Shown one piece after another: positions 2,754 to 57,897 of a stretch of DNA of 64,000 nucleotides (its first letter is position 1; each line of letters opens with the position of its first letter). A program made the translations under genes and the position numbers. Origin of the DNA: Ruditapes philippinarum (Eukaryota); assembly GCF_026571515.1 (NCBI RefSeq), contig NW_026852414.1, positions 1 to 64,000 on the forward strand. The letters run 5' to 3'. The notes below the pieces were generated by a model. The model did not search any database. It was not told the origin of the DNA and saw only the letters and a program-made list of their open reading frames with translations.

Positions 2754-2827
2754 ATGAATTTCTTAAATATTCGGCGGAAACTTGGAATATTTTCAAGAGC
2801 GGAAATACTTTTTCGAAAATGTGCAAG
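2754..2827 (+). CDS. Variable mini-exon V1: MNFLNIRRKLGIFSRAEILFRKCA + AG, donor GTAAGT
   Basis: ATG, 24 open codons + 2 nt, consensus donor AG|GTAAGT. Homologous to the other array members. Confidence 0.8.
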
Positions 2828-5097
2828 GTAAGTGTATGCGTTTTGCCTAATGTAAAACTGGTCCTAGAGATGCGCATAAAATATTACTTAATTAAGATAC
2901 AAAATGTATAGTCAGTTCAACAGTAGAGTTGAAGATCTTTCATCACAGTAATAGGGCGGTTAAAATATATAGAATAATGTAGATACTAGTATACCTTTGA
3001 AATTCAGAGTTTGCTTAAATTTTGAAGCATCGACTCTTAGAATATTACCAATCACATCGAGCAGGTGGCTGAAACGTACAATATCGAACAGATAAACATA
3101 CATGTATAATGTTTCACTTTGATAATAGTTTTACTGGCTAAGATTTCAAAAATTCATTTGTTGCCAATTCATTTGAATTATGCAGGATTCATTTTTATAC
3201 CATTTAAATTCATGAACAGACTCGATCCATCATCAGTGTCTGCTATTTCACTTGTTTTCTTTTTATCTTATGTTGTATTGCTCTCGTGGCACCTTAAAAT
3301 ATTTTCTCTAAGTTCAGTATGCAATTGGCATATTTGTTCATAGATTGTCTGTGATATTGCAACAATCATTTACAGAATCTGATCTTTTTGTTAAAATATT
3401 TGTATCGTGCGAACATGCAATAACGAATCGTTTCTGAGATAAGTTTACATATTAAGTTTATCTATCTATATTCAAAATTTGAATAAATCAGATGAAGATG
3501 ACAGATTTCGTAATAAAGATTTCGTAATAACATAAAGACTTTCGCGACAGAAATTAAAAATGAGAACAATGAACAACAAGCAAGATCTTTTCGTTCGTTA
3601 ATTCTTATCAGAAATTAATGTATAATTTCTGATCTTTAACAGAAATGATTATACAAAGGCTTTGCCGATTATGTTAACAAATGGCCAGAAAGTGACAAGA
3701 GAGCTCTTAATTCTGTCATTTTGATCTGCTTAAAAGGATATTTCGAAATTTTCACACTTTTAAATATTTAGTTGCTTTTCTTGGACGAGGTAGATAACAT
3801 TAAATCAAGTTTTTACGAATGTTACTACAATTTCAGAAAAAATTAAATCTAAACGGACGAAACAAATAATATAAATCATGGTGAATCTCCTGCTTCCATT
3901 TCAGTGTTTTGTGATCATTATTTTTAGAAATGGCCAGAGAGTTGTTTACTGTAACTGATATAACATAAAACACTTTTTGTCAGATCAATATTTGTCATTG
4001 CTCGTATTGTTTTCAACAGCTTTTCCATTGTGAACAGCAATCATTCAAAAAGGACTAATGATTATTAAAAATCTGATTTTACCACTTGAGATGATGTGAC
4101 GGAAACATTTATGTTTTTTGCCTATTGCATATAAAGTCCAAGCAAGCCTCCATTGAATGTTGCCTTTCCTTGTTGGTTAATGTTAACAAATTTTGACTTC
4201 TTTAAAATAAAAGCCCGTCATACTAGATGGTTGTTATAAAAGTATTTTGTTGCTCAAAAGCAGGGGCTGGGTGGCTCAGAAGGAACAGTAGAACATGACA
4301 CAAAATGTCCATTTACAATTTGTTCACCGCAAACATTTTATAAATATTTTCGCCGGAAGAAATTTTCAATTTCGAATAAATTGCATTTTAAATCATGTTG
4401 ATTTATTAAGAGATATATATGTGTTCGTTGTATGATTCAGATTGAAATTATATTAAATTCTAATAACAACTGACACCCTTTGACATTTCTTTCTTTAAAT
4501 ATTGAGCGCCATGCAAATAAGCGTAATTATGTAAAAGAATGTTTAGTTTTAGCAGCCATATATAGAATAAAATGGTTTGTAGTAATGTGCAATTATTTCA
4601 ACTTAAACCTTTTATAAATATTTCCACCGGAAGAAATTTATCAATTTCGAAAAAATGGCATTTAAAATCACAGAAATATACGAGTATTGTATGATGTCGA
4701 TTGAAATCATATTAGATTCTAATAACACCTGACACCCTTTGACATTTTTTCTTTAAACATTGAGCGCCATGCAAATAAGCGTATTTATGTAGAAGAATGT
4801 TTAGTATTAGCAGCCATATAAAGAATAAAATGGTTTGCATTAATGTGCATTAATTCAGATAACCCGAGGGAAAAGCTGCAAACTCATGATTGTTTTGTGA
4901 TACATAAAACAGGCATTGATCCTATAACGTAACACCGTCGTCAAAAGTCAATCAATTTAGACACGACAATAACGAAAAATAATCTGGCTAATTAACCAAA
5001 CATGGAATATTCAATTGAATTATACAATTCTCAGATTAGGTGTATTCTATGTAAAATCTTTTACAGAAAGGAATTTGATTTTTAAACTTCGGATAAT

Positions 5098-5178
5098 ATG
5101 AATTTCTTAAATACAATGTATTCGAAGGAAACTTTGAATATTTTCAAGTGCTGAATTATTGTTTCGGAAAAGTTCAAG
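5098..5178 (+). pseudogene. Pseudo-exon V2 (dead paralog of V6)
   Basis: 7-nt insertion (acaatgt) causing a frameshift, GGA>TGA, donor GT>GG, and a 20-bp tandem duplication over the donor. Confidence 0.8.
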
Positions 5179-6082
5179 GGAGGTGATTAAAGTTCAAGGA
5201 AGGTGATTAAAGTTTATATGTTTTTTTATTATTCATAATTACTTGTGACACATTGGTGCCACATAGTTCTTTATGGAAATATATATCAAATTATATATAA
5301 GTATATCTTAAACAGCGATTTTAAAATACTTGAATTTTCAAAAGAAACAAGAAAAAACTCTTTTTGCAACTTATATGTTTTGGTGTTGAATGTAGCAGGT
5401 AATTCATGTTAGTTGTAATTTGAAGTTAAATGTTGTTTATAATACATACAGTAAAAATAGGAAATCGTGTACATTTATATAATGATATATTGAAACTGTC
5501 GTAATCAAAAAAATAATATTAACATATTTTTAATGTAATGAAACCACTAAATAGATAGATAAATTAATAAATAATTTAATTGTAAAGAACTAGAAATAAT
5601 AATTGATTATTAAATTTACGACTTTAAAGAAATAGTGATAATAGTGAACTTAATCATCTTTATGACATATAACGAATATGTTATCGCAAAGTGCATGCTC
5701 AATTGCATATAATTCACTAACAATTATGAAATGTGGCCAAAGATATAACATAATAATCAAGGGAATCATTTCACAAAAGTTTAATTTTACATTTCCTGTC
5801 AAATAAAAAGCATATTGCATGAATTATTAAATTTGATATGATATGTCATTTACGGTAGCTAAATGTGCGACCTTTGTAACGAATATGCTAAAAGGGGAAT
5901 ATTTTGTTAACATATCATTCGGTTACAGATTAAAACGAAGACTTTTGCTTTCAACATTTGTCAGACATTGGCAACAAATGTGTATTCATTCTTAAAATTT
6001 TCGGATAGACATTGATAACACTAATATTTTGTAATTCGGAAACATAATCACTTTTCATTAAGTAGATTATTTGTTCTACAAA

Positions 6083-6156
6083 ATGAATTTCCGGTCTGTT
6101 CAGAGGAGTTAGAGATTGTTTTCTAGTGCCGAAATGCTATTCAAGAAATGTTTAAG
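6083..6156 (+). pseudogene. Pseudo-exon V3 (dead paralog of V7): MNFRSVQRS*RLFSSAEMLFKKCL
   Basis: 74-nt homolog with in-frame TAG (AAG in V7) and donor GT>GG. Confidence 0.8.
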
Positions 6157-7686
6157 GGAAAAAAATTATTTTAATGTTTGTGTCGGTTTTATAAAACCAT
6201 ATTTTCTTGAACAAGATAGACACATTAACCCATAGATTGTCGTTAAACACGTATTTATAAATATCTTATCTTTTGCACGTTCATTTATCTTTGATCTGTA
6301 ATTTGTATTACAATTGTAATATTGAGTCAGGCATTATAAGTAAGTCACGAGCAAACGACTCACGTATTATAAATATCGTTAAACAATAGCCGGAATTGTA
6401 TATAGTTACTGCATCAAAAAAAGATGGATACTTTTTAATTAAAATTTTAACTATTGTCATGTTTAAATGTTGTATACTGCTTTAATTGGTGCTAGGCGTG
6501 GACGGTCGGTTCGACTTTCCGGTACCATTCATGTACTTTTGCAAACTTCATTTAAAACTGCATAATTATAATTTAATAACCTGTGTGTTGTTATTAAGGA
6601 TGTAACAACACTTATAAAACAATTTCCAAACATCCAAGAATATGTAAAATATGTACTGCAAATGTTTTTACTCATTATAAGTAATTTTTAAATTATATGC
6701 ATTCATTTCTTATTTAAAAATTTGGCGTAGACTTTATCGAAAATAAATTTCTAATTACCTCCCTTTATTAATATGATATGTAAATTCGGTAATAACTTTA
6801 CAAATAATGCTTTTTGGAACTTACAATATTGATAAGTCTTCATATGTGCATCATATTTATGATATAAAACCATAACAAAAATTTGAGTTACAGGATCTTT
6901 AATGTTCATGGAAAGAATGGAACCCCCAAATTATTGACCTCAATAAGCGCTTGTAAGAAAATACTAAGCTCGGAATTATAACGAAATATATATATTTTAT
7001 TAAAACTATCTTAAATTGTTCACCTGTATGTTTATTATTTCAGGGGTTTTACACAGTATCATGAACATTTCTCATTGAACTTTACTATGTGTTTTTTTGT
7101 TTTAATCATTATCTAGTATCATTACGTTATCTATTTTGACATTTTAAAAATAAATAAGAATACTGAGGAATAATGGGCCTTTAGAAATTTTGAATGTTTA
7201 ACGTTCACTATTGAATGCTGGTTTCAAAGCTTAAATGCTGCTGGCCGTAAACAAATATATCGATTACACGAGCTATAAGATGTAATTTCTATCGAAACTT
7301 TGATTTAATTGTAAAGTCTGTGATTTTGATTCATGGCCTCTTTGAGCTTGAAAAATAGTGTCAAACTTGTAATAAGGTTTACATTGTTAAATTGTTAATC
7401 CTAACAGTTATTTGCATGCTCCCAACCTTTCTTCGCTCTTGTTCCCTCTCCCATTTTTTCTTTCAAATTATTTCTAATTGATGTATAAATAAGCCCCACG
7501 CACAATTTTAATTGAATCATGTTTGATGACTATATATTAACCAAATATTAGTTCATTGATCAAATATAGATCACCTTAGTCGAATTTGTCAATATAGAAT
7601 ATCCTGGTATGAAATTGCTCTGACATTTATTCATAAAAAACATGACAATAAACGAAACTTATCATAATTATAGTGTTAAAAGCTAT

Positions 7687-7909: not shown

Positions 7910-7983
7910 ATGAGTTTCTTGAATATACATATGAAATTGCGGCTCTTTGCAAGTGCGGAAATGCTGTTTAAGAAATGTACCAG
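7910..7983 (+). CDS. Variable mini-exon V4: MSFLNIHMKLRLFASAEMLFKKCT + AG, donor GTTAGT
   Basis: 74 nt, open, phase-2 donor. Differs from V9 at 9 synonymous and 3 non-synonymous codons. Confidence 0.82.
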
Positions 7984-11715: not shown

Positions 11716-11743
11716 ATCAACCATTTTTAAATGAATGTTATTA

Positions 11744-13030
11744 TCATTTTACCAAGAACCAAACAATTACTATCAACTTAAAACTAAATATTTGATATGG
11801 CCCATTCAATACAAAATGTTGCTGCGATGAAGCTTCTGAACAATTATAAACGTTTCCATCTCTTTCTAGGAAGACTGTGTTCTGTACTTCTGTTCTAGAA
11901 ACCACATACCCATCTTCAAACGGATCACTTTCATGAATTATCTTTCTCTGGACACCCAGACGCATTAAAGCACCGCAATATTGATTGGCAAATACTTCAG
12001 ATTGTTCTTCAGAATATAATGAGTGCTTAATTTTGCTGTACTTTATGTTAATAGTTCTGTCGCCCTTTTCTACAGGGACTCCATTTATCATAAAACTTTT
12101 GTTCTCCTTTTTTATCTCAGGTATATATGGCACTGTGACGCATACCAACTGTTAGCTCTAAATACTCTGTGAAACTGCATGGATTTTGGTCTACATCAGT
12201 TTAACTGTCAATCACTTGTCCTGATGCTTAAGCCAATGACAAGTCGTAGTCCTTCACACTGTCCATGTTACTTTCTCCGTCCGGGAAATAGTTACTTAGC
12301 GCTTGATATCTTATTCTTTCTACTGCAAGTCTTTCCCCAAATGTGTAATACATCACGCGTGCTTATCCACCTTTTGCTTCAGTATCAACTCTGTACTTTC
12401 CATCTCGGTAGTTCTGCCATCCCATTTTCATTTTATATGCACTGCTTTGTCCTCTGCCTTTCTTTACAGCAGTTGCCTAAAATATATTAAAGCTTTTATT
12501 AACAACCAATTTCATACAATTTTGGCCTAGAGGGACATACTCTATAACTGATGTCAAACTAAACAACCTCCAAAACTTAAATAATAGAATCTTTTAAAAT
12601 ATTATAACTTAAATTAAAAGTTTAAGCTATACATTCCAAATCATTATCGATAAAATCAGCTGTTAAAATATGTTTGCAGTACAATGTACTGTAAAAATAA
12701 TCTATGTAGAGTTGTTGCTGTACAATTAATGGGTTGAAGCAATTTATTTCAGAACGCCTCTAAAATTGATAAATTGTGGTAAAATGAGGTTTCGTTCAGC
12801 ATAGATTCTTCTTTGACATTGTATTTATTTATCATTTTAATTTCATTGAGCACAAACTTTATGTTTCGAGAATATAATCTGCTATATGTACGGAGTTCCC
12901 CTTTATATCTACATCTAAAGTTTTGTTTACCAAACCTGTGGCAAGGTTTTTGCAAACTGCAGGCATTTAAAAGCACACTATTACAACCTATAAGTCTTGT
13001 AATGATAATTTCAAATGCAAATCAATGATC
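11744..13030 (-). pseudogene. Remnant of the second (accessory) gene of the IS3EU-type element
   Basis: Protein-like minus-strand ORF pieces at 11744-12148 and 12749-12976, convergent with the transposase remnant and inside the TIRs. Confidence 0.45.
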
Positions 13031-16000
13031 ATACCAGTAGGATGATTGTAGCCCTAAAACACTCGTCTTAAAATCAAGGCTTTTCATTTAGATTTACAGT
13101 ACCTAAATCCACAAGGACAGCATGTCCAGCCTGCTTGATTGTAATGTTTATTTTATAGCAGACGCTGTGAACTGCATCAAAAATGGACTATTCAATGTAG
13201 GTATAAACAAATGTGAACAAATGTACCAAGTTATTTTATATTCCCCTAAGCCCAATTCGGACCTTTAACCCCTTCAATCCGGGACGGATTGTCTTTTGCA
13301 ATAAATAAATAAACCCGCACAAGCCAGTCCTCACCATGAAATTAAGTGTGTGTGCGTGTCCTAGTGTGATTTAAAACAGATTTTCTTGTATATAAAGTCC
13401 AACTTACTTTACTTCCTTCGCTACTCGTATTCTCGCTGCCCAATCTGTCAACGGAATGGTTTCCCGCGTCCATTTTTAATGATAAGATTTAATTATTAAA
13501 TATTAAAAATTTAATTTTAAATATTAAGAATTAAATTTTAAATAATAAGTTTTAAGTTTTAGATATTAATTTAAAATGTCCCTCCAGGGCTTCCATACAA
13601 TGCACATGCTTCTTACATAATGTTATTAAATACAAATATAACTACATATTTGTTTACTTGAATTTTACGTATCAAAATAAAATTAGTCAACATAACATGA
13701 CATTAACTGCTAATAATAGCAGCTCCTTCCATGGTCAAAAAAGCAATCTATAAGAGACGACGCCGCTCACAGGCGTCGCCAATGATCTTTTATCATTTGA
13801 ATTAATAAGAAGATGTGAAAAATGTGACGCAACTCTGCGCGTTTCGCTGGATTATGTTTTTGTATCTTTCATTCAACTTTTGGGGGTGTTATGCAAGACT
13901 TTACAGTTGCTCCTTAGAAGTTACTTAAATACTATATTCCCATATGTCTTGAAGAGCAGTTTTGAATGTTGAAGGATTTATTTTTAGGCCAAAAGAATGA
14001 ATAAGTGAGTTAATATCATGATCAAGAATCAAGTGAAATAAAACATGAAATAAATCATTATAACAAATAATATTATCAACGGAAACATAAACAAGCTTGC
14101 AAACGAATATTAACATGAACATTTTTGAACATACATCAAACACATTTTCTCTAGAATTATGTCAAAAATTCCTAAACTTACATAGATACGAAAGTGGTTT
14201 AACTCATTGCTTTACAAATGATTATTACCCATCCAGTGCGCATTTTTAATTTGAGAAAAATTTATAGTATTTTTATACTTTTTCTAGATTAAACTTGACA
14301 TGAAAAGTGATCTGAATGTATTAGCAAATGTATTTATGGACATGTTAAATAACATTAAAACTATTCAAGGACATGTTAAATGACATCATAATTACATATA
14401 AACGTGGGAAGCAATTAAAACAACCTGTGTTAATTTCAGAATACTGTTACCATATATAAATTGATGTCCAAAACTGCTAGCGATAATTGAAATGACGAAG
14501 ACTAATGTACAAGCGAAACGCGAGATTTTATTCGTCGAAAAAAATATTTTTTTGTCATTTTCTTTTCGTCGTTTATGCAAAATGTTATCTTTCATTCATC
14601 TTAGTTGCAAAAACATATATCTAATACATGAATTATTGTTTCCTTTGTTTCTATTCGCCTGTCTGAAGTCGTTGCATGTTCATCCAGCTCCAATGCTCCC
14701 ATTTTATCAAATATAACAGAATTATTATAAAAATTATCAAATATCTGATATTTTTGAAAACCTACAAATTGAATAATTAGATAAAAACAACCAAAACTTC
14801 TTACAAATTAAAATAACATGTAACTTTATGTTCGTACTTTAATAGTTGTTGAAGGAAATGCATGTTGGGATACTCAGCATTCTAAATTAGAACTTTTCAA
14901 CTTTCAAACTGATAGAGATATACATTTAAATGATAGCAAATATATGTATAACGTGAAATTGGCGACTACCATTTTCTGTTTCAGTTGAGCTTAATTTACC
15001 TTTTTCTGTATAATTATAGTCCAGCTCTTTGAATTCTAACCGAAATTAGGAACGAAACTGTAATTAATTTTAATTGTTCAGGTAATTATTGCATGTTAAT
15101 TTGTAATCACTTTACTCTTGTGACGATAGGTTTTGTTAACGTTTTTCTATTTTTATATTTCTTTATTGATTGCTGTGATAGAATAAAACAGTATCGTGTT
15201 TAGTTTAATCAAACCAATGGCTACCATTTTGTTCTGGAAGAAAAACCCTAAATGGGTTTATTTCAGTGTCGTGTTATTTCTTAAAAAATGTTGTAGGTCG
15301 TTAATGGAAAAGCAAAATGTTTTCAATATGCACAACCATATTTTCTAAAACAAGCACTCTTTGTCGAAGTTTACTTTGCGAATATACCATTCTAGTAACA
15401 GGAATTATTTTAATTATTCAAAAATTATATTCAACAAACACATTATCATTTAATAGTTCTTTTGTAATACTATGTAAACAGCAAAAGCTATAAATATAAA
15501 CAATTTTATTCTTATTTGTGCACAGAACTGGTAATGCTGAAATCCTTAAAAATATGGCATTTATACGTTTCTGAAAGTTTCTTTATGTCATTTTATTTAT
15601 TTTAGAATGGTTAATGAAAAATCAAATATCAGTTTTCTTGTTTTGTGCAAATATTATATTTCCACAAATTGTAGTGAAAAGAAAGGATTATGAATTGTTC
15701 AGTAAAATTATTTTGCGTTCTAGTTTTTTAGTTTTATAAATTGTTTTTTTTAATAACTTACAACCTCAAACTGGTAAAAATCTTTACGACTCTTTTTTAT
15801 GAAAATATGAAAATATATTACTTATCTGTAAATGTCAATAAAGGTGTGCTTTCGACAATGCAGAAAGTCAAGCGGGAGTCGTTTATGAAAGACAGGTTTT
15901 CAAAGTTTTGCCAACTTGGCCAAATAAACATTTACATATTGCAGTTGATAAAAACATTAAGTATATAATTTCAATAGAAATCAAGTACATCACCACTCTA

Positions 16001-16910
16001 TTGTTATGTATATAGCTTCTAAGCTGACATTTCCATGTTTACTTAGTGTCTTGTAGCCGATATGTATTTTATTGCAGGTTTGTATTTTTAAAAAGCAGAT
16101 ATATAATGATTTAGCTCTCGATTGACATTTGGATACAATTTCTCATTTGTTTTGCTTCTGTGATACTAAATAACGGCTTTTGTACTTAGTAAAAGCAATG
16201 AAAGTGTAAAAAAGAGAAATATTGCTACTCTGATTACATCCCTCGATTATCCAATATATCTTTAATGTTTTAAATGTCATATTACTAATGGCTAACAGCA
16301 TGTATACTACTTCTGGCGAGTAACAAAATGAAAAAAAAGTAGTTTAATGTTAATGTAATTAAAGTAACCTCATGCATATGTGATGAGTGTCATACATTTG
16401 TAATAATAAAGGATGAAACGGTTTATCATCACAAAACAAATAATGTCAATAAAACAGCATTTTTTTCCGGGATTTAAGTAATTTCCTTACAATACACAAA
16501 GAGAAGATATCACCCACTTCTTATACCTGACACCTTATACCTTGGTAAAATTCTCTCTTTAACAGACAAAAAACGAAAAGAACATTACAGGAAGAAGTAA
16601 ACTGTTTTCTTTTACAATAAACGTCACTATGCGTGAGTATAAATAAAATTAGTTATAATTGCGAGATATAATTGTAAATGTATTTTTGTTATTGAGCTAA
16701 TAGAACAAGCATTAGTCTTTGAAGCTGTTTTAAGGCAACATTGGCGTCTTACGCACTGATTAAAACACGAACTTAACGACAAGTTGTCTAGTTAATTAAC
16801 TAAGATAGGAATACATAACTGTGTTCTTCGAGATATTTTCACAAACTAAAAATAAAATAAAATTTTGAGCATAGTGCCGAATGCAAGTCAACCATTAAGT
16901 TTGTTAGAAT

Positions 16911-16984
16911 ATGAATTTCTTAAACATTAGACGGAAACTTGGAATATTTTCAAGTGCGGAAATACTTTTTCGAAAATGTTCAAG
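16911..16984 (+). CDS. Variable mini-exon V5: MNFLNIRRKLGIFSSAEILFRKCS + AG, donor GTAAGT
   Basis: 74 nt, open, consensus donor. Confidence 0.85.
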
Positions 16985-18985
16985 GTAAGTGTATGCATTT
17001 TGCCTAATGTAAAACTGGTCCTAGTGATGCGCATAAACTTTCACTAAATTAAGATACAAAATGTATGTTCAGTTCGACTATAAATTTGACGATTTGTCAT
17101 CACAGTAATAGGGCGGTTAAAATATATAGAATAATGTAGATACTAGTATACCTTTGAAATTCAGAGTTTGCTTAAATTTTGAAGCATCGACTCTGAGAAT
17201 ATTACCAATCACATCAAGCAGGTGGCTGAAACATACAATATCGAACAGATAAACGTACATGTATAATGTTTCACTTTGATAAAAGTTTTACTGGCTACGA
17301 TTTCAAAAAGTCATTTGTTGCCAATTCATTTGAATTATGCAGGATTCATTTTATATCATTAAAAATCATAAACAGACTCGATCCATCATCAGAGTCTGCT
17401 ATTACAACGTTTTCTTTTTATCTTTTGTTGTATTGCTCTCGGAGCACCTTCAAATATATACTCTTATTTCAGTATGCAATTGGCATATTTGTTCATAGAT
17501 TGTCTGTGATATTGCCACGATCATTTACAGAATCTGATCATTTTGTTCAAATATTTGTATCGTGCGAACATGCAATAACAAATTGTTTTTGAGATAAGTT
17601 TACATATTAAGTTTATCTATCTTTATTCAAAATTTGAATAAATCAGATGAAGATGGCAGATTTCGTAATAACATAAAGACTTTCGCGACAGAAATTAAAA
17701 ATGAGAACAATGAACAACAAGCAAGATCTTTTCGTTCGTTAATTCTATCAGAAATTAATGTATAATTTCTGATCTTTAACAGAAATGATTATACAAAGGC
17801 TTTGCCGATTATGTTAACAAATGGCTAGAAAGTGACAAGAGAGCTCTTATTTCTGTCACTTTGATCTGCTTAAAAAGATATTTCGAAATTTTCACACTTT
17901 TAAATATTTAGTTGCTTTTCTTGGACTAGGTAGATAACATTAAATCAAGTTTTTACGAATGTTACTACAATTTCAGAAAAAGTTAAATCCAAACGGACGA
18001 ACCAAATAATATAAATCATGGTGAATCTCCTGCTTCCATTTCAGTGTTTAATGATCATTATTTTTAGAAATGGCCAGAGAGTTGTCTACTGTAACTGATA
18101 TAACATCAAATACTTTTTGTCAAATCAATATTTGTCATTGCTCGTATTGTTTATAACAGCTTTTCCATTGTGAACAGCAATCATTCAAAAGGGACTAATG
18201 ATTATTAAAAATCTGATTTCACCACTTGAGATGATGTGACGAAAACATAAATGTTTTTTTCCCATTGCATATAAAGCCCAAGCAATTAAGCGTCCATTGA
18301 ATGTTGCCTTTCCTTGTTGGATTTTGTTTACAAATTTTGACTTCTTTAAAATAAAGCCCGTCATACTAGATGGTTATGATAAACGTAATTTGTTGCTCAA
18401 AAGCAGGGGCTGTGTGGCAGAAAAGGAACAGTAGAACACGACACAAAAAATGCATTTACAATTGGTTCACCGCAAACCTTTTATAAATATTTTTGCCGGA
18501 AGAAATTATCAATTTCGAATAAATTACGTTTGAAATCATGTTGATTTATTTAGAGACAGAAATATATGTGTACATAGTATAATGCGGATTTAAATCATAT
18601 TAAATTCTAATAACACCTGACACCCCTAGACATTTCCTTCTTGAAATATTGAGCGCCATACAAATAAACGTATTTATGTAAAATGATGTTTAGTATTAGC
18701 AGCCATATATAGAGTAAAATGGTTTGCATTAATGTGCATTAATTCAAATAACCCTAGGGAAAAGCTGCAAGCTCATGATTGTTTTTGATACATAAAACAG
18801 ACATTGATCCTATAATGTAACGCCGTCTTCAAAAGTCAATCAATTTAGACACGACAATAACGAAAAATAATCTGGCTAATTAACCCAACATGGAATATAT
18901 AATTGTATTAAATAATTCTCAGATTAGGTGTATTCTATGTGAAAACTTTTACAGAAAGGAATTTGATTTTTAAGCTTCGGATAAT

Positions 18986-19059
18986 ATGAATTTCTTAAAT
19001 ATTCGAAGGAAACTAGGAATATTTTCAAGTGCTGAATTATTGTCTCGGAAAAGTTCAAG
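18986..19059 (+). CDS. Variable mini-exon V6: MNFLNIRRKLGIFSSAELLSRKSS + AG, donor GTAGGT
   Basis: 74 nt, open, phase-2 donor. Confidence 0.78.
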
Positions 19060-19698
19060 GTAGGTGATTAAAGTTTAATATTTATATGTTTCTTTTATTA
19101 TTCAATATTACTCTAATGAGCTTCTTTGTGACACATTGGTGCCACATACTTCTATCTGGAAATATATCTAAATATGTATATAAATATATCTAAAACAACG
19201 ATTTTATAATACTTAAATGAATGTTTTAAAGTAACAAGAAAACACGTACAAATTGTTTTGCAACTTATTGCAATATGTTGCAAATCAAAATAACGAATAT
19301 GATATCGCAAATTGCATGCTCGAATGCATACAATTTATTTATAATTGTGGACAAACGTATAACATAATAATCAATGGACTCATTTCATAAAATTTTAATT
19401 TTACATTTCCTGTCAAAGAAAAAAGGCATATTGCATGAATTAGTAAAATTGACATGATATGTTATTTACGGTAGCTAAATGTGCAACCTTTGTAACGAAC
19501 AGGCTAAAAGGGGAATATTTTGTTAACATATCATCCGGTTACAGATTAAAACGAAGACTTTTGCTTTCAACATTTGTCAGACATTTACAACAAAAGTTTA
19601 TTAATTCTTATAATCTTCTGATAGACATTGATAACACTAATATTTTGTAATTCGGAAAAATAATCAGTTTTTATTAATTGGAATATTTGTTCTACAAA

Positions 19699-19772
19699 AT
19701 GAATTTCCTGTCTGTTCAAAGGAGTAAGAGATTGTTTTCTAGCGCCGAAATGCTATTCAAGAAATGTTTAAG
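19699..19772 (+). CDS. Variable mini-exon V7: MNFLSVQRSKRLFSSAEMLFKKCL + AG, donor GTAAGC
   Basis: 74 nt, open, phase-2 donor. Confidence 0.82.
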
Positions 19773-22700: not shown

Positions 22701-23499
22701 ATTAATTTCAAATTCATTATAAATGAATTGCCACGTTGCCAGCAGAATCTAAAGAACATGTACGAACAAATTTAGCCTTTACGTTACATACTTTACAAAT
22801 CGTGTAGCATTATGAAAATCAGATAAATAAATGAGAAAAAATTGACAATTATAGGTTAATTTGGTCTTCTCTGAAAATGTTCATCTTAAGTGTGCAAAGT
22901 TTTAGATATTACATATCTTCTCTGTGTGTAGTCAGATTTTAAATTTGCTAGGGGACTGTATAGACTGTACTAGTATTTCACGAGTTTTAAATTTGAAAAT
23001 AACATACCTTTCAATATTTTCAGTTGCAAAGTTTTCATTGAAGTTTACATAATCCTGACGAAGAATACTGTCCTCTCATTTCTGTAGTGAGTGGAAGTGC
23101 TTTAATCATATATCGTGTGCTGGACTGTATGTATTTTATAAATTCATTGTGTAAATAAAGACAATATGTCTTATTGTACTCGAGGGACTTGTTGTATAAA
23201 TTTTAATTATACTTTTTCTGATAAATAAAAGACAGCAAAAAAACCTTGTTGAAACCAGATATGTAATGTTTTCAAAACAAAGCATTCGATATGACAATGG
23301 CAGATGCATTCAGAGAGTGAGAAGAGTGGGAGAAGCTAAATGTTTGTGAACTTATTTAAAGCAAGTGAGTTTTCTTTCAAATTAAGTGTACCTTAGCAAG
23401 TCATATTTCTTAAAAGGACAAACTTAAACCGAAGAAAATAACAACTTTGTTGCGAGTTGAAACGATATGTAATTATTTTACTATAATAAGACTATAACT

Positions 23500-23576
23500 C
23501 TGGCCTACGCAAAGATTGTTAACAGAAATAAAAGTATATTCTTTAGTACTGAAATGTTAGTCAAGAAATGTTCAAG
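23500..23576 (+). CDS. Divergent mini-exon V8: (CTG)AYAKIVNRNKSIFFSTEMLVKKCS + AG, donor GTAAGA; start ATG absent
   Basis: Open frame and intact donor. CTG GCC stands where paralog V13 has ATG GCC. May be a pseudo-exon or use a non-AUG or internal start. Confidence 0.45.
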
Positions 23577-39797: not shown

Positions 39798-39863
39798 ATG
39801 GCCAACTAGCCAATAATTGTAAAGTATATTCTCTAGTGCTGAAATAGTGCAGAAATGTTGAAG
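39798..39863 (+). pseudogene. Pseudo-exon V13 (V8 type)
   Basis: ATG GCC AAC TAG, then aaagtatattctctagtgctgaaata...gaaatgttgaag. Donor lost (GA). Confidence 0.55.
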
Positions 39864-42490
39864 GAAAAAGGGTTTGTTTGCTGCTTGCTTCTTGTTTTAG
39901 GCTAGTGATCACTTTCATCTTGATATTGGCCATATTAATTCAATGCAAAACCAATATTCATTTTCTCGCTAATTGGAGGTTAAATTGCACAATTCGTCAT
40001 AATTAAAGGCTTGAAAAACGTGTAGTGTTGTTTTCAGAGATAATAAATTAAACATATTAAATAGTTGTCCCTTTTTCTATTTCTACAGTTTGTTTCTGAA
40101 TATTGGAAACTTAAACAATGACTTTCTTAAAATGTTATCTAAATTGTTCTTTTCTATTAATTTATATCATGATTACAAAATTATTTATTTAAATACCATC
40201 TTTGTTAATCTGAAAGACGGATTCCCCGCAACCCCATATCACATCATCAACGCAGGTAACAAATACAATCATCTATTAAAGGCCCATTATATCCTCAAAA
40301 TATTTAAATCCTTATTTTTCAAATGCATCTTATTTTTGAAGTCCCGTATAGCATCCAAAAAGAACTCATTGGCCGGTTTCTAAACTAACTCCTGCTTTTG
40401 GTGCTTTTTGCAATATATACATTGAGAGTGATATAGTATTTTGTATGATAGTTAAAATGTTAAAATGCTAGTTGGTTTCATGGTTTACATTTTGCTACTT
40501 TATGACAAACAGTTTCACATTCAGTGCTACTGTATAAAGTGACTGTAGCTTGCAATTACCTTTATCGTACATGAACATGCTCAATCAGACCGTACCTGCA
40601 ACATTTTAATTACACCGTTTTGAGCGTTTTCTTTTTTTGGAGGGGGGGATTCTGTTTTTTCTCTATTTTAGTTTCTACTGGAAAGTAAAAGACATATTTT
40701 TCAAATATTAACAAACCATTGCAAACTTACAAAAGTGTGTGTGTGCATGTGTGCGTGCTTGCGTGTGTGCGTGCGTGCGTGTATTTGCGTTTCATTGATA
40801 ATAACTTAAGTTAAACAGATTTACATAATGTAGATTAAACCTTAAACCTGTAAATCAATTTATGATTGTGTTGAATATATGTGAGAGCAGATGATTTTTT
40901 AATTTTATTACTTTCAATCGTCATATATCATTGTTAACTCTGTGTCATTATGCACAACAATAAATAAACTCAATATAAGCATTTAAAACACAGAAGTTAG
41001 ATGGCGGATAAATATCACTGTTTTCTAATTTTAACGGTCGGTCGATTTAATAAATAGTTTATTTACGATGTAACCAAATGTTAAAAAGATCGCTCAAACT
41101 AGGATGTTTAAAAATGCTCTTTTTTTGTGATTTTCGCTTTTATGTTATTAACTAATGTTTCCATTTTGATCACCTTTAGATTTGAATTAATATCTATCTC
41201 TATAAAAGTGGTCTTTTAAACTAGATTCGAGAGGAAAATTATCTTAAACTGACGTTTGTAAATGATAAAATAGCTACAAAAATGGGATTCATCGAGATCA
41301 ATGTAATAATATCGATTTTACCGAGTTTGTTACTAATGACATTGAAAAGTACATTTCGCATGAATGATATGAAAAGATTAATACAAGCGTATCAGCAATT
41401 ATTAATATCATATCACGTGTTAATCTCAGTCCAAGTCACGTTTTTGTTCAGATTCTGAAATGTCTCTTACATAAATATTATAGTTCTATTTTGTCTATTT
41501 GATAAAAGGTTTTCAATGAATATTGTAATACTTCTTGCCCTTTGAACCATTATCAGATGTTTACTATCCTAGTATGAAAAGCTTAATTTATTTTTCGATA
41601 GTATTCTATAACATTTCTTTTTTTAATAACATCAGCAGCGCGATGTATTTATTTGAGATATATATTTTACAAGGGAGAAAGTATTACACTTTTCTTATCT
41701 GAATACGTCCCTTGTTATGATAGGGATTTCATCACTTTTTATAGCATAACTGTTACACTAATTGTATATCAGCCTGTGGACTGACATAATTTAAACAAGG
41801 CTTTTTATGTATTATAGAAATTCATAAAATTTCATTAAAATGTAATGGAATTAGGTTAAATTTGATTTATTCAAACACGGAAATACACCACTTGCTAAAA
41901 ACCCATATTGTCTGCGGAAAATGACTCTAGTGGCGCAATAAGATACCACATAATTTGTTTTACGATGCATAAAGAACAAAGGGCAAGGACTGCCGACACC
42001 GGCCGCCTAATGAAAGCTTTCTTTTTAAATAACTATGCGCTTTACAAATGACAGACAGCTGACTATAGATTTCATTGTACATGTTAAAACATGTGACTTC
42101 GTAAATAGGGCCAGCTTTGAAAAAAGCTTTAAATACATTATTGTTCTTTAAACAATAAGTTTTCATAAAGAAAATATTGTTGACAAAATGAAGGTTGTTT
42201 AAATCTTTGTATAATCTTAAAAAAACGTTAAGAGGTCGTTGCTACTAATTATTGTTCTAATGTTTACATTTTGTTTACATTTTCATTTAATTCATGTTAA
42301 AAAACACGGATATTGAGTATACGTTATAGTTCCTTCTTTGTTACAAAACTGTCGCAAGTTCTTTATCAAATAAATGATAAAATTTGCATCGGTCTTGAAA
42401 TATGATTTCCAGCATAAAATGCATGTGGAAATGTTTTTGAATACACTAAATGGGCGACAACTATTTGGCTTCTTAAACACAAAGACCACA
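39823..42490 (+). repeat. Segmental duplication block C, copy 1 (paralog ~46343-50911; partial third copy ~43704-44146)
   Basis: Colinear. Copy 2 carries additional HINE and SINE insertions. Confidence 0.9.
40735..40790. repeat. (GT)n/(GTGC)n microsatellite
   Basis: Directly visible. Confidence 0.9.
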
Positions 42491-46336: not shown

Positions 46337-46380
46337 ATGAGAATATTCTCTGTTGCTAAAATACTCCAGAAACGGTCAAG
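46337..46380 (+). CDS. 5'-truncated mini-exon V14: MRIFSVAKILQKRS + AG, donor GTAAAA
   Basis: 44 nt, open, phase 2. Homologous to the 3' half of the family. Function doubtful. Confidence 0.35.
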
Positions 46381-47199: not shown

Positions 47200-49149
47200 T
47201 TAGCTCACCTGAGCATGCTCAGGGTGAGCTTTTAGGATCGATGATTGTCCGTCGTCCGCCGGCCGTCGTCCGTCGTCCGTTCACATTTAGTTGTTAACAC
47301 TCTAGCGGTCGCATTTTTGCCTCAATCATCATCAAACTTGGTCAGGATGCTTATCTAGTTGATAGCTCGGATGAGTTCGAACATGGGTAATCTCGGATAA
47401 AAAAGTAAGTCACTGGAGCTAAAAAATAGAAAAACCTCGTTAACACTCTAGCGGTCACATTTTTACATCAATCATCATCAAACTTGGCCAGGATGCTTGT
47501 CTAGGTGATAGCTCATGTGAGTTCGAACATGGGTCATCTCGGATGAAAAACTAGGTCACCGGAGCTAAAAATAGAAAAACCTTGTTAACACTCAAGCGGT
47601 CACATTTTTGCCCCAATCATCATCAAACTTGGTCAGGATGTTTGTCTAGTTGATAGCTCGGATGAGTTTGAACATGGATGATCTCGGATGAAAAACTAGG
47701 TCACAGGAGCTAAAAATAGAAAAACCTTGTTAACACTCTAGAGGTCACTTTTTTGCCTCAATCATCACCAAACTTGATCAGGATGCTTGTCTAGGTACTT
47801 GCTTGGATGAATTCGAACATGGGTCATCTCGGATGAAAAACTAGGTCACCGGAGCTAAAAAAAGAAAAACCTTGTTAACACTCCAGCGATCACATTTTTG
47901 TCTCAATCATCATCAAACTTGGTCAGGATGCTTGTCTAGGTGATAGCTCGGATGAGTTTGAACATGGGTCATCTCGGATGAAAAAGTAGGTCACCGGAGC
48001 TAAAAATAGAAAAATCTTGTTAACACTCTAGCGGTCACATTTTTGCATCAATCATCATCAAACTTGGTCAAGATGCTTGTCTTGGTGATAGCTTGGATGA
48101 GTTCGAACATTAGTCATCCTGGATGAAAAACTAGGTCACAGGAGCTAAAAATAGAAAAACCTTATTAACACTATAGCGGTCACATTTTTGCATCAATCAT
48201 CATCAAACTTGGTCAGGATGCTTGTCTAGGTGATAGCTCGGATGAGTTCGAACATTGGTCATCTCGGATGAAAAAGTAGGTCACCGGAGCTAAAAATAGA
48301 AAAACCTTGTTAACACTCTTGTGGTCACATTTTTGCCTCAATCATCATCACATTTGATCAGGATGCTTGTCTAGGTACTTGCTTGGATGAGTTTGAACAT
48401 GGGTCATCTCGGATGAAAATCTAGGTCACAGGAGCTAAAAATAGAAAAACCTTGTTAACACTCTAGTGGTCACAATTTTGATTCAATTGTCATCAAACTT
48501 GGTCAGGAAACTTGTCTAGGTCATTGCTGGGATTAAATCGAGCATGGGTCATCTCGGATGAAATACTAGGTCACAGGAGCTAAAAATAGAAAAATCTTGT
48601 TAACACTCTAGTGGCTACTGTTGCGATCCAAATATCCTGTAAATTGGTCTGAAAGTTTGTTTTGATGATTTAAGTCAAGTTCGTACATGGGTCATCTTGG
48701 ATGAAAAACAAGGTCACACCGCCCAAATATGGAAAAACCTTGTTTACTTTCTAGTGGTCACATTTTCGACTCAATTATCATCAAACTTGGTCAGGATGCT
48801 TGTCTAGGTAATTGCTTGGATGTGTTCGAAATCGCATGTGGAACTAGGTCACTGGAGCTAAGAATAGAAAAATCTTGTTAACACTCTATTTGCTACGGTT
48901 TTGATCCAAGTATCCTGCAAATTGGTCTGAAAGTTTGTTTTGATGATTTCTAGGTCAAGTTTGAATATGAGTCACCTGGGTAAAAAAAAGGTCACACTGC
49001 TGTATATGGATAATACTTGTTAACACTGTAGTGGTCACATTTTTGACTCATGTTGTCATGAGACTTGGTCAGAATGCTTGTCTAGGTAATTGTTTGGATG
49101 AGTTTGATGGGTCAGGTGAGCGATCTAGGGCCATCATGGCCCTCTTGTT
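47200..49149 (+). mobile_element. HINE/Helentron-like element carrying ~13 tandem 145-bp core repeats
   Basis: Subterminal inverted repeats gctcacctga / tcaggtgagc, (CGTC)n microsatellite, 145-bp period (47439, 47584, 47729, 47874, 48019...), 3' hairpin agggccatcatggccct, T-rich target, and an empty site at ~40630. Confidence 0.9.
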
Positions 49150-50127: not shown

Positions 50128-51275
50128 TTACATCCCTTGTGATAATAGGGATAATAGGGATCTTATCACTTATTTTAGCATAACACTAATATCAGCATGT
50201 GGACTGACATAATTTCAACAAGGCATGCTTTTTATGTATTAAAGAAATGCATAAAGTTTCATTAAAATGTAATGGAATTAGGTTAAATTTGATTTATTCA
50301 AACAAGGAAATACACCACTTGCTAAAAACCCGTATTGTCTGGGAAAATTGACTCTTGTGGTGCAATAAGATACCACATAATTTGCTTTACGATGCATACA
50401 GAACAAATGGCAAGAACTGCCGACACCTGCCGCCTAATGAAAGCTTTCTTTTTAAATAACTTTGCGCTTTACAAATGACAAACAGCCGACTATAGATTTC
50501 ATTGTACTTGTTAAAACATGTGACTTCGTAAATAGGTGCCAGCTTTGAAAAAAGCTACGTTCTTTAAACGATACGTTTTCATAAAGAAAAGCCTTGCAGA
50601 CAAAATGGAGGTTGTTTAAAACTTTTTATAATCTTTCAAAAAAAAAAAAACGATAAGAAGTCGTTGCTACTAATCATTGTTCATATGTTTACATTTTGTT
50701 TACATTTTTATTTAATTCATGTTAAAATGCACGGATATTGAGTATACGTTATAATTCCTTCTTTGTAACAAAACTGTCGCAAGTGCTTTTATCAAATAAA
50801 TGATAAATTTTGCATCGGTCTTGAAATAAGATATCCAGCATAAAAAGCATGTAGAAACTTTAATACACTTATTGGGCGACAACTGTTTGGCTTCTTAAGC
50901 ACAAAGAACACAATTGTATTATAGGTGGGAAGAAACTTCTAAATGCGGGAAACTGTGCGCGGAAGAAAAAATCGAAAATGGCGAGAAAAATATATGCATT
51001 GAGTTTAACTGAATTATGGCTGAATTAAGTCTTCCAATATAATAATGATTTTCTTTTTAAACTTAAACCCACATTAGGCTTAAGAAACGAATATTCATTC
51101 CTTCTGTAGAAAGGGTAAACGTGAGTTTTTATAGCATGCGCTCAATGAGAAATTAGTTGTCATAAAAGTTACTGAAGCAAAAGTCTAAACTAAGTAGTGT
51201 TTTGACTTCCACATAAAAACTAAAACCATATAACCGTACTAATTACCAAAAGGCAGCACCATCTATTGACAGTAC

Positions 51276-54200
51276 ACACTTAAACACATCTTCGTTATTC
51301 TGTATCTCGGAAAAGAAAAATTTAAGGATCATGAATGTGAATTGTAGAAGTATACGCGGGGGCAAAAGTGCTGAGTTTCAAGCGGTTTTAAATTATATCC
51401 GCCCAGACATTGTTTGCGGAACAGAATCATGGCTTAAAGGGGTCAAACCCGGGAAACCAGAAACAACAGATGCTATTAAATCTAGTGAAGTATTTCCAAA
51501 CACTTATTATTCTTATAGAAACGACAGAGGCACTGTAGGAGGAGGAGTTTTCATCCTTGTGCATAAAGATCTTGTTTCAGAAGAAAAACCAGAACTTGTA
51601 ACTAATTGTGAAATTGAATGGACAAAAGTTAAAATGAAAGGAGCCAAAGACCTACTCATTTCATCATTTTACATGCCACATAGAAGTTTAAACTATATAT
51701 CTGAACTCCGTAAATCACTAGAACTTACCACCAAGGGGAAAGAAAAACACATAATACTAGCTGGAGATTTCAACTGTCCTGATATTGATTGGAACACTTT
51801 AACAGTCAATAGAAACGCCCAGGATAAGGATATACAACAAGCCCTCCTTGATGTTACTACAGACTTTAATTTAACTCAGGTACATGATAAACCTACCCGG
51901 GAAAATAACTTACTAGACCTTATATTCACATCAAATGCCACACTCATAAAATCTACGACAAATGCTCCGGGGATCTCCGACCACGCCATTGTAGTAGCTG
52001 ACTCTGACACTAAGCCCTTTTATATAAAACAAAAGCCTCGGAAATGTTTTATCTATTCTAAAGCGAACTGGGAAGAAATAAAATCGGACTGTAAAAACAT
52101 CTCATCAAATATAGCCTCCCTGGCTAACAAAGGTTCAGAAGTGGAAGAACTCTGGGATTTATTTAAGTCCAACTTGAAGACGACAATAAACAAGAACATT
52201 CCATCTCGTGTAAAGAAATCGAAACAATTCATCTCCTTGGTTGAACCAGAAAACTTAAAAAAATGTTGAAACGAAAAAGCCAGACTTTTTAAAAAAGCCA
52301 AGTCAACAAGAAATTGGGCCTTATATAAAGACTTTCAAAAACATTGTAAAAGAGAATTGAGAAGAGCAGAATGGAACCATGTGAATGACGTAATAAATGA
52401 AGGACTTAAAACAAATAACACAAAACCATTTTGGCGTTACGTGAAAGCAAGAAAAGAAGATAACATTGGTGTTGCTCCCCTCAAAGATAAAGGCCACTTA
52501 AATTGTGATAGTTTAAAACGAAAGCAGAACTTCTAGTAAAACAATTTGAATCAGTATTTACCAAGGAAGATAAAAATGTGAACTTACCTGAAATTCCTAC
52601 TCGTATTGAAGAAACATTACCAGACCTAAATATATCAACAGGTGGCGTTTGTAAACTTCTTAAGAACTTAGATATATCTAAAGCAGTTGGACCTGATGAA
52701 TTACCAACAAAAGTTCTTCAATATTGTGCAGAAGAACTAGCACCAGCAATCTCAACTATATTTCAAACATCTACCGACTCGGGAAATCTACCCTCCGATT
52801 GGAGAAATGCCTTCGTTTCACCGGTCTTCAAAAAAGGGGACAGACACCTCCCAGAAAACTTATCGACCTGTATCATTAACTTGTATTCTTTCCAAAACTA
52901 CTGGAAACACATTATTTGTCGGCACATCTTGAACCATCTGGATAAATACAAAGCACTTACGTCATTGAATCACGGATTCCGAAGCGGCTTCTCATGTGAA
53001 TCACAACTAATTGTCACCACTCATGATCTTTTATCCATGTACGATAATAACGCACAAGTAGACACCATCATTTTGGACTTTAGTAAAGCTTTTGATACTG
53101 TTCCCCACAAAAAGCTTCTTCATAAACTTCACTCCTATGGCATCAGAGGAAACTTACATACTTGGATCGCCAACTTCTTGATGCAACGCAAAGATGAGTG
53201 TAGTCGTTGAAGGCGAAACAATGCATCGTCGGTAAATTTGGGTTCTGGGTCCCACAGGGTCAGTTTTGCTAGGACCATTGCTTTTTCTTACCTACATTTT
53301 AACCGATCTTCCCGGACCATGTTAAATTCACAATTGAGGGTTGTTTGCTGATGATTTTTTTATATTCGCCAGATCAAGTCCCAAAAAGACCATCCTCCAA
53401 CTTCAAAAAGACCTAGCAATATCTCGCAAACCTGGGGGAACTACCATGGGGGATGAAAAATTTTAACTCAAAAAAAAAATGTTACCTGCTTGAGTTTCGA
53501 AGTCCAAAATCGAATGCCATTTCTAACAACTTTTGATAAAACATCTTCAAACAAGTTTCAAGTTAATCCTTAAACCTTAGGTATCACTTTCTCGGATGAC
53601 ATGAAATGGTCAACGCATATTAGTAACATCTGTAAAAGAGCTAACTCATCTATTGGATTCCTAAGAAGGAACTTACGCCATTGTCCTAAACCATGCCGCA
53701 AAAAATGCCTACCTAGCCCTAGTCCGCTCCAAATTAGAATACGGATGCACTATCTGGGACCCTTATACCAAAAACGAAATTGATAAACTTGAACGTATAC
53801 AAAGGCAAGCCGCTCGATTTATTACCAATAACTATACTTCTAGAGATCCAGGATGCGTTACATCAATGCTGGAACAATTGGAATTACCAAGCTCCAAGAA
53901 GCGCAGAAGACTACACCGGCTTACTTTCATGTATAAGTAGTGGAAGGGCAAGTACCGGCAATTAACATACGGGAATACCTAACTCCTCAGGGCATTAGAC
54001 GATTCTGTAAGAGCTAAATCATATAAAGACTATATAAGTGACAATATTGTGGAAAAATCTGTGTGTAATAATCAAAAGTGTTACAAACCAGTATATGTAA
54101 AAAAACAGAAAAACTATAAAAATTCTTTTCTTCATCAGAACAGTGTTAGACTGGAATAAATTAAAGTGACTCTCAAGTGTGTTCATCAACAGTTCAACAA

Positions 54201-54979: not shown

Positions 54980-55056
54980 ATGAATTTCTTAAAAGTAACA
55001 AGGAATAAGAGATTGTTTTCAAGTACGGAAACACTTTGTAAAAAGGATGATTCGAG
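54980..55056 (+). CDS. Variable mini-exon V15: MNFLKVTRNKRLFSSTETLCKKDDS + AG, donor GTAAGT
   Basis: 77 nt (one extra codon, frame and phase kept), open, consensus donor, unique flanks. Confidence 0.8.
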
Positions 55057-57817
55057 GTAAGTGAAATTGAAATATGTGAAATTTTCATAACGTTGATGAA
55101 ACTGTGAAATTAAATTTTCACTGGCGTGCTGTTCAATCGATTGTAATTAACCTATACGTGCTTTCCAACTTGGAAACATTTTTGATATAATCACTTCTAT
55201 TCCTAATTAAAATTGTATTTTAGAGACGGTATATTATTTATCGACTTCTTATGATTTATTAAAAAACTGATGTATAATACATATTTATAATGTGCCTTAA
55301 TTGTGTACATATTAATCAAGGACCTAGTATCCATCAATCATTTCGGATAACACTTCATCTTATTTTTCTATATGTAAATTTTCTTGACACCATATTACCT
55401 AGTAATTGCTATGGCCATCCGCAAAGGGTTTGAAATTCTTTTGATGTTGAAGATAGAAAGACGAACTGGTGATTTTTCGTAAAGGATATGTAATATTGGC
55501 GATAACGAGGATATTTGTCATTCACGTACGATCGTTTAAATAAGTATATTCAAGTAATAGTTTGAAAACACATTGATTTCTTTTTTCTCACAAATATACG
55601 GACCATTTTTCTCATAAATCTAAGTTTTATCTCTGGTAACATGGTGCAAAATAAGTGTTTTTCTTGTAGACATAAGAATAGGTTATATTCAGCATAGTGT
55701 AAGCAAAGTATTTATACTTAATATGAAATACGACCTAGAAATCAGACACATTCAACCATTATGACGAAATGCAAACAATCAACAGCTTTATTAAGATCAA
55801 AATATCAATGGAGTACAGACGCCATAGTTAGATCATTATGAAATAATGCAAAGCTTTCAAGCTTATAAAGAGAAAACATTAAAAATAGGGCTCAGTCACG
55901 ATAAGAAAGCCATTTGAACGTCTTTAACATATTGCAGACAAGTAGCAATTATAATGTAAAAAGAGTTAAAACTAGGACAGAATCATCACTATTAAACATT
56001 AAAGTGCAAAATATCATAGAAAATCTAGTTAAAATGCCTTTTTCCACATGTTTGTGTTAATTTAATTTTTAAAGTTTTTATTCGAAGATTATAATCATAT
56101 GAGTCTCATAAATAAAATAAATGTATTTACATTTAAAACATGACATGAAAATATCTGAAGCAAAAGGTACTTTATTTGCAACAAATCACTTGATAATTGA
56201 AATAATGTTATTTAATGTTATTTTCTTTAATAGAAAAAACACTGAATTCGCCATGATTATAAAAAAGTTAAAACTTGTCCTTTTTAGTTAATATCATTTG
56301 TTCTTTTAATGTGAAACAGTGCCTATTTGTGAAAAAGTAAACCGGTGAATTTTAAATAAAACATGATCGATTACCCAAACCATTCGTTTGCAGGCAAGCT
56401 TGAAAGGATATTTTTCCATTTTTCACATTGAATTAAATTGTTTGTAAATTTCAAAGAAAATATAATTTAGGACACAAAGCAACATAATGGCTTAAATTGA
56501 TTATGTTTCTCTCTTCTATTAAATATTCAAAGGAAGACCACGAATTGTTTAAATTTAGGGTTCCTAATTTAATCTTTAGTTCTGCAATTGATTATGTAGA
56601 AGTGAATGTACTACTAGTAGCAAAGTATAGGTGATTAAATCACAAATGTAATTGAATTATTGTCACTCCAATAATTAAAGATTCGGCCACATGACGTATT
56701 AATTCAATTACACACAATTGATGACTTTTCTGCGTTGAAAATAGCTGGGTTCTTAAATAATAACAAGTTCAAGTTCTCTTTTTGTGCGTTTTTTGTCGTT
56801 ATAGGTGTTGGCTTTTATGCGTACTGCGTGGTTCACTTTACGACGTTTTATCAAAACGGTGCTAGGGGTGGCGCGAAGGATATTGCACTTTTTATTACCC
56901 CTTATATACATACTAAATAAAGCCAGTATACAATTTTCATACAATTTTCATAATGCTTATGAACTATTTTTTTAACCTATTATCTATATACTGAACATCC
57001 CTTGTATTTTAAATGATGAACGGAAAATGTAATACTAGTAAGCACTTTCATTGATAAAATCCTTACCAGAAATAAGCACACATTATAAAAATTTTACTAT
57101 TTTGTTATCTTCACCTATTCTATTTTTCGTTCTCTCTGGGGATTTCCCCTTTCGCTGTTTTTATATCATCAATACAACAGGTTTCAAGTGTTGTTTTATA
57201 GTTTTTAGGGAAGTTGCCGTATTTCTCGTAGTTTTCGGTGTTTAATTATTATTGTTGTTGGTTGTTGTTGTTTTTTTATTTTTTTTTTATTTTTTCTTAT
57301 TCAATATTAATCAATTTATTTATTGTTAATTTTTTTTTGAATTTAATTATTTATTCATTTTATTCAATACTGATGATAATGGGAAGGGAGATGTCTGCAA
57401 GACTAAGATGTTTGGATACTATTGTTGCTTCAGATTTCTTTGTCTATCAGAAACAAAAATATTCAGTCAGAGTCTGCCATTTCAGTCTATGTTTGTCTTT
57501 ATTGTTCTCAAGGGATCTGGTTTTTTCCAGAATTTTATTTATTTTATTCCTAGAAAATATTCTTCAGTTTGATACATAAAGTACGGCTATTATGACGCTC
57601 GGTGTGATTATTGTCGTAAAAAGAAATCTCGAATGGTCATGAACGTATGTCTATTGATTAAGTCAAAGCGATTTACTAACTAGTTGTCATGAGGCAGTGT
57701 ATTGATTTTCGCATGCGTGGTAAGTGGTGATATTATGACATTTTCTTGTTTGCCCATACCTATGTTATTCGAGATAAAAACAACAGGTTTTATCTAAGGT
57801 GATAATAAAAGATCAGA

Positions 57818-57897
57818 ATGAACTTCTTAAAATGTTCAGGACCATTAAATTCAAGAAGGCAATCATTTGACATGCTTTTTAAAAGACGTGATACAAG
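57818..57897 (+). CDS. Most divergent mini-exon V16: MNFLKCSGPLNSRRQSFDMLFKRRDT + AG, donor GTACGT
   Basis: 80 nt (two extra codons, phase 2 kept). MNFLK start and MLFK motif conserved. Confidence 0.72.

Follow-up and report, generated by a model that had tools for sequence, protein, structure and literature searches.

What kind of gene could be served by a row of coding segments of about 25 codons each, all similar to one another and all on one strand? The question is raised by the first 64 kb of contig C901 (NW_026852414.1; 96,545 bp) of the Ruditapes philippinarum assembly GCF_026571515.1, which comprises 1.4 Gb in 15,874 contigs at 30% GC. These 64,000 nucleotides are the window of the present analysis; no N stretches were met in the DNA examined. 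An initial annotation had reported an array of about 16 paralogous mini first exons and had suggested a locus with a variable N-terminus. The array is real. The count was too low, as the family extends to the contigs C15122, C14770 and C14427, and a further dead unit is present in the window at about 26232. With a probability of roughly 0.5 we consider the array to consist of alternative, promoter-linked coding first exons that are spliced to a constant region, giving one gene many N-termini.

All nine units initially described as intact were located exactly at their claimed positions on the plus strand: 2754-2827, 7910-7983, 16911-16984, 18986-19059, 19699-19772, 24964-25037, 29660-29733, 54980-55056 and 57818-57897. 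The build is common to all nine and was read at each of them, i.e., an A at -3, ATG, 23-25 further codons, AG and then GT. Seven units are 74 nt long, the unit at 54980 has 77 nt and that at 57818 has 80 nt. Unit length modulo 3 is 2 throughout, therefore the coding phase is the same at every donor. A DNA profile built from the nine units recovers all nine in a search of C901 (E 1e-10 to 1e-23). At E<0.05 all 15 profile matches on C901 are on the plus strand, as had been claimed for the array, and the remaining 38.6 kb of the contig past the last unit of the window contain no profile match at this threshold.

The intact units belong to several types. Type I comprises 2754 (MNFLNIRRKLGIF..., donor GTAAGT), 16911, 18986 (donor GTAGGT) and 29660 (donor GTAACT). 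Type II comprises 7910 (MSFLNI...RLFASAE..., donor GTTAGT without a stop codon after the donor) and 24964 (donor GTGAGA). The unit at 19699 is of type III (donor GTAAGC). The 77-nt unit at 54980 represents type IV, which predominates on C15122, and the unit at 57818 (type V, donor GTACGT) is the most divergent and the last on the contig.

Between subfamilies DNA homology is restricted to about -8 to +81, counted from the ATG, with unalignable flanks. The information content per position rises at -3/ATG and is back to background after donor position +5. Within these narrow borders the differences are concentrated at codon position 3 (409 vs 296 and 213; 56 vs 20 and 9). According to Nei-Gojobori the proportion of synonymous differences (pS) is about 0.60 in the 74-nt units and that of nonsynonymous differences (pN) 0.20-0.22; the 77-nt units have values of 0.58-0.63 and 0.08-0.09, respectively. 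The resulting pN/pS ratios in the ATG frame are 0.36 and 0.15. The two shifted frames of the same alignments, which served as a control, yielded ratios of 1.45-5.3. Because selection is specific to the ATG frame, the units read as translated 5′ exons under protein-level selection and not merely as conserved DNA.

The borders of the units are also conserved. All 15 intact units, i.e., the nine in the window and C15122:6394, 11013, 60836, 136126 and 147383 and C14770:17433, possess the A at -3, the ATG and AG|GT, and 13 of the 15 have a G at +5. Each unit has its own start codon and its own 5′ splice site; conservation sets in at the ATG context, without a conserved 3′ splice site ahead of it. 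The encoded peptide of 24-26 codons is basic (net charge +3 to +5) and begins with a conserved M-N/S-F-L. M1, F3, L4 and L19 are invariant; F13, S15 and E17 are nearly so. A hydrophobic core was not found in the peptide, and its helical hydrophobic moment is not above that of shuffled controls. A signal peptide and a classical amphipathic targeting helix were rejected on these two grounds. A short cytosolic docking or regulatory tag is no more than a guess.

At least some of the units seem to have a promoter-like upstream block of their own. About 400 bp of upstream sequence are common to the units 18986, 5098 and 29660 and to an orphan copy at 26.0-26.2 kb, with 86-92% identity. Ahead of 18986 the block extends from 18592 to 18985 (plus strand) and is conserved with 4712-5097, 29293-29621 and 26005-26226. 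Its most invariant part contains CAATCAAT, TAATTAAC and, roughly 90 bp ahead of the ATG, a TATATAA. Placed from the TATATAA, transcription would start about 60 nt upstream of the ATG. The sequence upstream of 29660 (29281-29659) is homologous to the promoter block of 18986, and the homology of 29660 to this group ends at the donor. Further, the composite motif TAATTAAC-N6-7-GGAAT occurs four times on the plus strand of C901, e.g., at 16793, 118 bp ahead of unit 16911, and a fifth time at the C15122:6394 locus. Each of the five copies precedes a unit by 109-120 bp, and three subfamilies are represented. A control sequence of 99 kb gave 0 matches, though the minus strand of C901 has two copies. 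In subfamilies beyond those three no shared upstream motif was found.

How widely are such units distributed in the genome? A 121-bp DNA query found copies on C901 only. A protein profile of the nine peptides, run against the whole genome, yielded 22 significant matches; by contig the profile matches are 13 on C901, 8 on C15122 and one each on C14770 and C14427. The eight units on C15122 (249 kb) are all on the plus strand between 6.4 and 158.5 kb, spaced 5-55 kb apart. Copies outside C901 have the same ATG context and the same AG|GT ending as the C901 units. Over 1.4 kb C14427 matches the C15122:147 kb region at about 90% identity and may represent a second haplotype. Judged from these matches the family comprises at least 20 copies of a start exon of 74-80 bases, same-stranded on each contig. 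The units are confined to a few contigs, four in all, and therefore are not a dispersed transposon.

These properties lead us to the following proposal. Each unit would bring an apparent promoter of its own, a well-placed start codon, 24-26 codons of a basic, non-hydrophobic N-terminus, and a canonical 5′ splice site. One first exon would be selected through the choice of its promoter, and this exon would be spliced over all later units to one shared acceptor which completes the AG- codon. The outcome would be one protein with at least 20 alternative N-termini. Promoter choice together with a shared acceptor is the most economical solution because there are no private downstream exons and the spacing is as narrow as 639 bp. 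Here we infer transcription, the common acceptor and the location of the constant exons. As to the latter, the last 1.2 kb of C901 overlap C9726:135763-136983 (minus strand) with 94% identity; thus the locus probably continues on C9726 (minus strand), with the constant exons further downstream. Exon 2 would be expected on C9726 below 125.7 kb (minus strand) or, past C15122, on C3053 above 220.5 kb.

Several observations weigh against this proposal. The 38.6 kb of C901:57.9-96.5 kb, 10 kb of C9726 and the 89 kb that follow the final C15122 unit revealed neither a recognisable constant exon nor a common acceptor. The search used ORF (open reading frame) lists, a coding score based on amino-acid composition, tblastx of the C901 against the C15122 tails, and Pfam on larger ORFs. 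It returned transposon ORFs only and no exon common to the C901 and C15122 tails; the 10 kb of C9726 gave no coding signal. The implied introns are long, >90 kb for the first unit. In the RNA-seq runs X4, X5, X6 and X10 from the same species (up to about 13 million reads each, 4-19% of each run read, tissues unspecified), examined across 16800-22799, the depth over 16911, 18986 and 19699 was 0-0.9, and there were no joints or loose ends at their donors 16985, 19060 and 19773. A profile search in 1.84 billion representative proteins gave only four low-complexity, multi-stretch matches, and a word-index search in proteins of 32-101 amino acids gave no match to the peptide, longer non-representative proteins being outside both searches. 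The RNA result is absence of support, not proof of silence: because sampling was shallow and tissues are unspecified it neither refutes nor supports the proposal. Of the variable first-exon locus as originally suggested, the translated 5′ exons, the conserved donors, some promoter-like blocks and the lack of private second exons stand, whereas the constant exon with its acceptor was not recognised.

Pile-ups of RNA reads occurred in this stretch at two places only, and both are of a different nature. The interval 20267-20483 is a GATC-bounded repeat of about 200 bp; its RNA depth in X4 and X5 is about 500-700x per mate orientation, and back-joints as well as joints to the opposite strand are numerous. 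Probably it represents a dispersed or tandem element with high expression that is not part of the exon array. A pile-up at 21682-21711 was discarded as a 30-bp chance match without splice sites.

The strongest competitor assumes a tandem family of separate small genes. Their private later exons would be short or too fast-diverging to be seen, as in peptide families with a conserved leader and a hypervariable mature part. The spacing of 5-55 kb on C15122 leaves room for whole genes, and the missing constant region is what such a family would predict. In C901 the room is not everywhere available. From the donor at 19060 to the ATG at 19699 there are only 639 bp, matching the close spacing of about 640 bp noted initially, and about 400 bp of this gap are the conserved upstream block of the next unit. 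Further, where the first exons of two units are well preserved (7910 with C14770:17433 and with 24964; 54980 with the C15122 units), nothing is shared past +81 to +147. All tblastx self-matches in C901 are accounted for by DNA-level repeats; since protein-level self-similarity beyond these repeats is absent, there are no paralogous second exons. The DNA between the units is transposon or unique non-coding sequence. Thus, the claim that no conserved second exon lies between units is borne out, as no paralogous private exon was found nearby. The peptide also lacks a signal-peptide core. Taken together, separate small genes are unlikely, albeit less so than any other alternative.

One candidate for a second exon was a 76-bp element about 500 bp past several C15122 units. 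It turned out to be a tRNA-Asn gene of the opposite strand and was rejected. These tRNA-Asn(GTT) genes (L019:2003-2078, L023:2040-2115 and 2474-2549, L020:975-1049, on C15122 and C14427) are 95-98% identical to each other. Several type IV units have such a gene about 500 bp downstream and in opposite orientation; the tRNA genes are far better conserved than their surroundings.

A different explanation is suggested by the decayed copies. A module consisting of the promoter and first exon of one gene may have been copied segmentally, with only one or a few copies in use and the others being silent, orphaned 5′ ends. At least seven decayed units are present in the window, all on the plus strand. 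Two of them, initially listed as dead, were confirmed: 5098-5178, a paralogue of 18986, has its frame broken by a 7-nt insertion and its donor GT changed to GG, and 6083-6156, a paralogue of 19699, has an in-frame TAG and a lost donor. The DNA profile detects both (from 5095 and 6079). Of the other supposed dead units two are weak, i.e., 33841-33877, of which the 3′ half is left, followed by donor GTAGGT (E 0.02), and 39798-39864, which has several stops and a lost donor and is matched by the profile as a faint remnant at 39823-39864 (E 0.02-0.04 together with 33841-33877). The remnant at 31033-31062 is very weak (nhmmer E 3.8), its resemblance being limited to upstream bases and the first codons. 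Absent from the earlier list is an orphan at 26005-26300, a conserved promoter copy (26005-26235) followed by a decayed unit with its ATG at about 26232. The two units described as odd but open were both met again. At 23518-23576 a unit without in-frame ATG retains the C-terminal two thirds and a good donor, GTAAGA; the short open unit at 46337-46380 (46336 in the profile match) has 44 nt, i.e., ATG, 13 codons and AG, then GTAAAA, and is in the same phase.

The relationships between these copies are partly visible. The block 653-6496 duplicates 14835-20125 at approximately 87% identity. All three units of 14835-20125 are intact, against one of three in 653-6496, where the other two are dead. 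A second local duplication connects 36.5-40.6 kb with 44.2-47.2 kb and contains one degenerate unit per copy, 39798 being the paralogue of 46337. The units originated in repeated rounds of tandem and segmental duplication, and copies were often lost. This clear birth-and-death, and the lack of RNA at three intact units, is what orphaned 5′ ends would predict. Against this, purifying selection is frame-specific across old, otherwise unalignable copies in which synonymous sites are saturated. Further, the ATG context and the donors are retained in about 19 copies, and silent relics should resemble 5098 and 6083. Therefore, mostly orphaned ends are also unlikely and rank behind separate small genes.

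Within the duplicated block a 1.1-kb stretch, 17094-18200 vs 2940-4060, is 94% identical, locally up to 99%, which is above the block average of about 87%; the stretch does not occur outside the locus. The elevated identity could result from gene conversion or from a conserved regulatory region in an intron. An exon was ruled out, as no reading frame is kept in both copies.

Could the units be complete genes by themselves, i.e., unspliced small ORFs of 25-26 residues ending in Arg-stop? In most units the sequence AG|GTAAGT doubles as Arg plus stop, and TAA, TAG or TGA follow directly after AGG in 12 of the 15 intact units. The unit C15122:158422 has no GT but retains the Arg-stop, and a spliced partner was not found for any unit. 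Yet G+1 and G+5 are conserved, and neither is needed by a stop codon. The final Arg codon is invariably AGG, whereas other Arg codons of the peptide vary. The three units in which the stop is missing (7910, 57818 and C15122:11013) have retained GT and G+5; therefore the conserved signal is the donor and not a stop codon. C15122:158422 is also unusual at residue 2, as expected of a decaying copy. Stand-alone micropeptide genes are thus improbable.

Even less probable is that the units are part of a transposon or satellite, or are a gene family of the spliced-leader RNA type. The units are repeated and short and have no visible cis partner exon, and the neighbouring DNA is rich in transposons. 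Spliced-leader RNA arrays likewise consist of repeated mini-exons with their own promoter and donor and without a downstream exon in cis nearby. Their exons, however, hardly differ from one another, are shorter, do not code for protein and precede an Sm site. Here, synonymous sites vary in a codon-periodic manner, the peptide is under selection, homology is confined to the exon, and the region past +6, in which an Sm site would be expected, is not conserved. An Rfam family was not matched and no tRNA was found in the window. The distribution of the copies, about 22 significant ones on four contigs and in a single orientation per contig, largely refutes this explanation. Finally, a scheme that dispenses with a constant region in cis, in which each unit is an independent promoter-exon-donor gene whose coding leader is trans-spliced to the transcript of one or several acceptor genes and brings them a selected N-terminal peptide of 24-26 residues, is kept on the list because no acceptor was met within about 48 kb downstream and there are no private exons; nothing supports it positively and its probability is very low.

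We return to alternative first exons of one gene. In the clustered protocadherins variable exons are spliced to shared constant exons. In the UGT1A locus paralogous alternative first exons with individual promoters are positioned upstream of common exons, with pseudo-exons interspersed. In its first exons the array has the same layout with a cassette 10-30 times smaller. Like vertebrate protocadherin alpha and gamma it is a one-orientation tandem array of paralogous 5′ exons, with promoter-like upstream blocks that contain a shared element in some subfamilies, and with birth-and-death of copies. In the protocadherins, however, the variable exons of about 2.4 kb encode a whole ectodomain and membrane span; here 74-80 nt encode 24-26 residues. 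Similarly, UGT1A shares the paralogous first exons with decayed copies in between, yet its first exons of about 860 bp encode a substrate-binding domain, and neither UDPGT nor any other domain was found in or near the array. With respect to the size of the cassette, plectin and the auxiliary subunits KChIP and DPP6 are closer. In plectin, KChIP and DPP6 small alternative first exons alter only a short N-terminus and hence localisation or gating. Their first exons are few and not recognisably paralogous to each other; in the array there are at least 20 clear paralogues with a conserved M-N/S-F-L. Variable N-termini of Kv4 auxiliary subunits are the subject of one published account (PMC3973911). 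The initial reading of the array as a variable first-exon cluster is partly supported.

Should the units serve a single gene, the array would be a variable-constant locus in the style of the protocadherins and UGT1A outside vertebrates and in its smallest form. More than 20 promoter-linked cassettes, each held by selection, would alter only the first 24-26 residues. Such a locus would allow testing the role of a short basic N-terminal tag with invariant M-N/S-F-L, e.g., in docking, gating, turnover or localisation, and likewise whether cells of a non-vertebrate are diversified by promoter choice. Even without a constant part, frame-specific selection alone can reveal an unannotated coding exon below the usual ORF cut-offs.

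Some minor observations pertain to the surroundings of the array. Positions 160-650 of the window are a dispersed repeat; the first 650 bp of the contig have at least 40 genomic copies. Therefore, the contig starts inside a repeat, and further units may be present upstream on another contig. A 135-amino-acid ORF at 11747-12151 (minus strand) is likewise a dispersed repeat and occurs at least 97 times in the genome. A minus-strand ORF of 378 amino acids without Pfam match lies between the two copies of a perfect 83-bp direct repeat (26666-26748 and 28747-28829); this element, 26666-28829, comes just after the orphan promoter at 26.0-26.2 kb, whose unit it may have disrupted. At 47291-49104 a 145-bp satellite is repeated about 11 times and has a higher-order period of 290/435 bp. 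A retrotransposon of the long interspersed nuclear element type with Exo_endo_phos and reverse transcriptase domains occupies 51217-53937 (plus strand), between the dead units and 54980. Just downstream of the last unit, 58919-59388 and 60488-60956 constitute a 470-bp inverted duplication, 97% identical, with the two copies about 1.1 kb apart.

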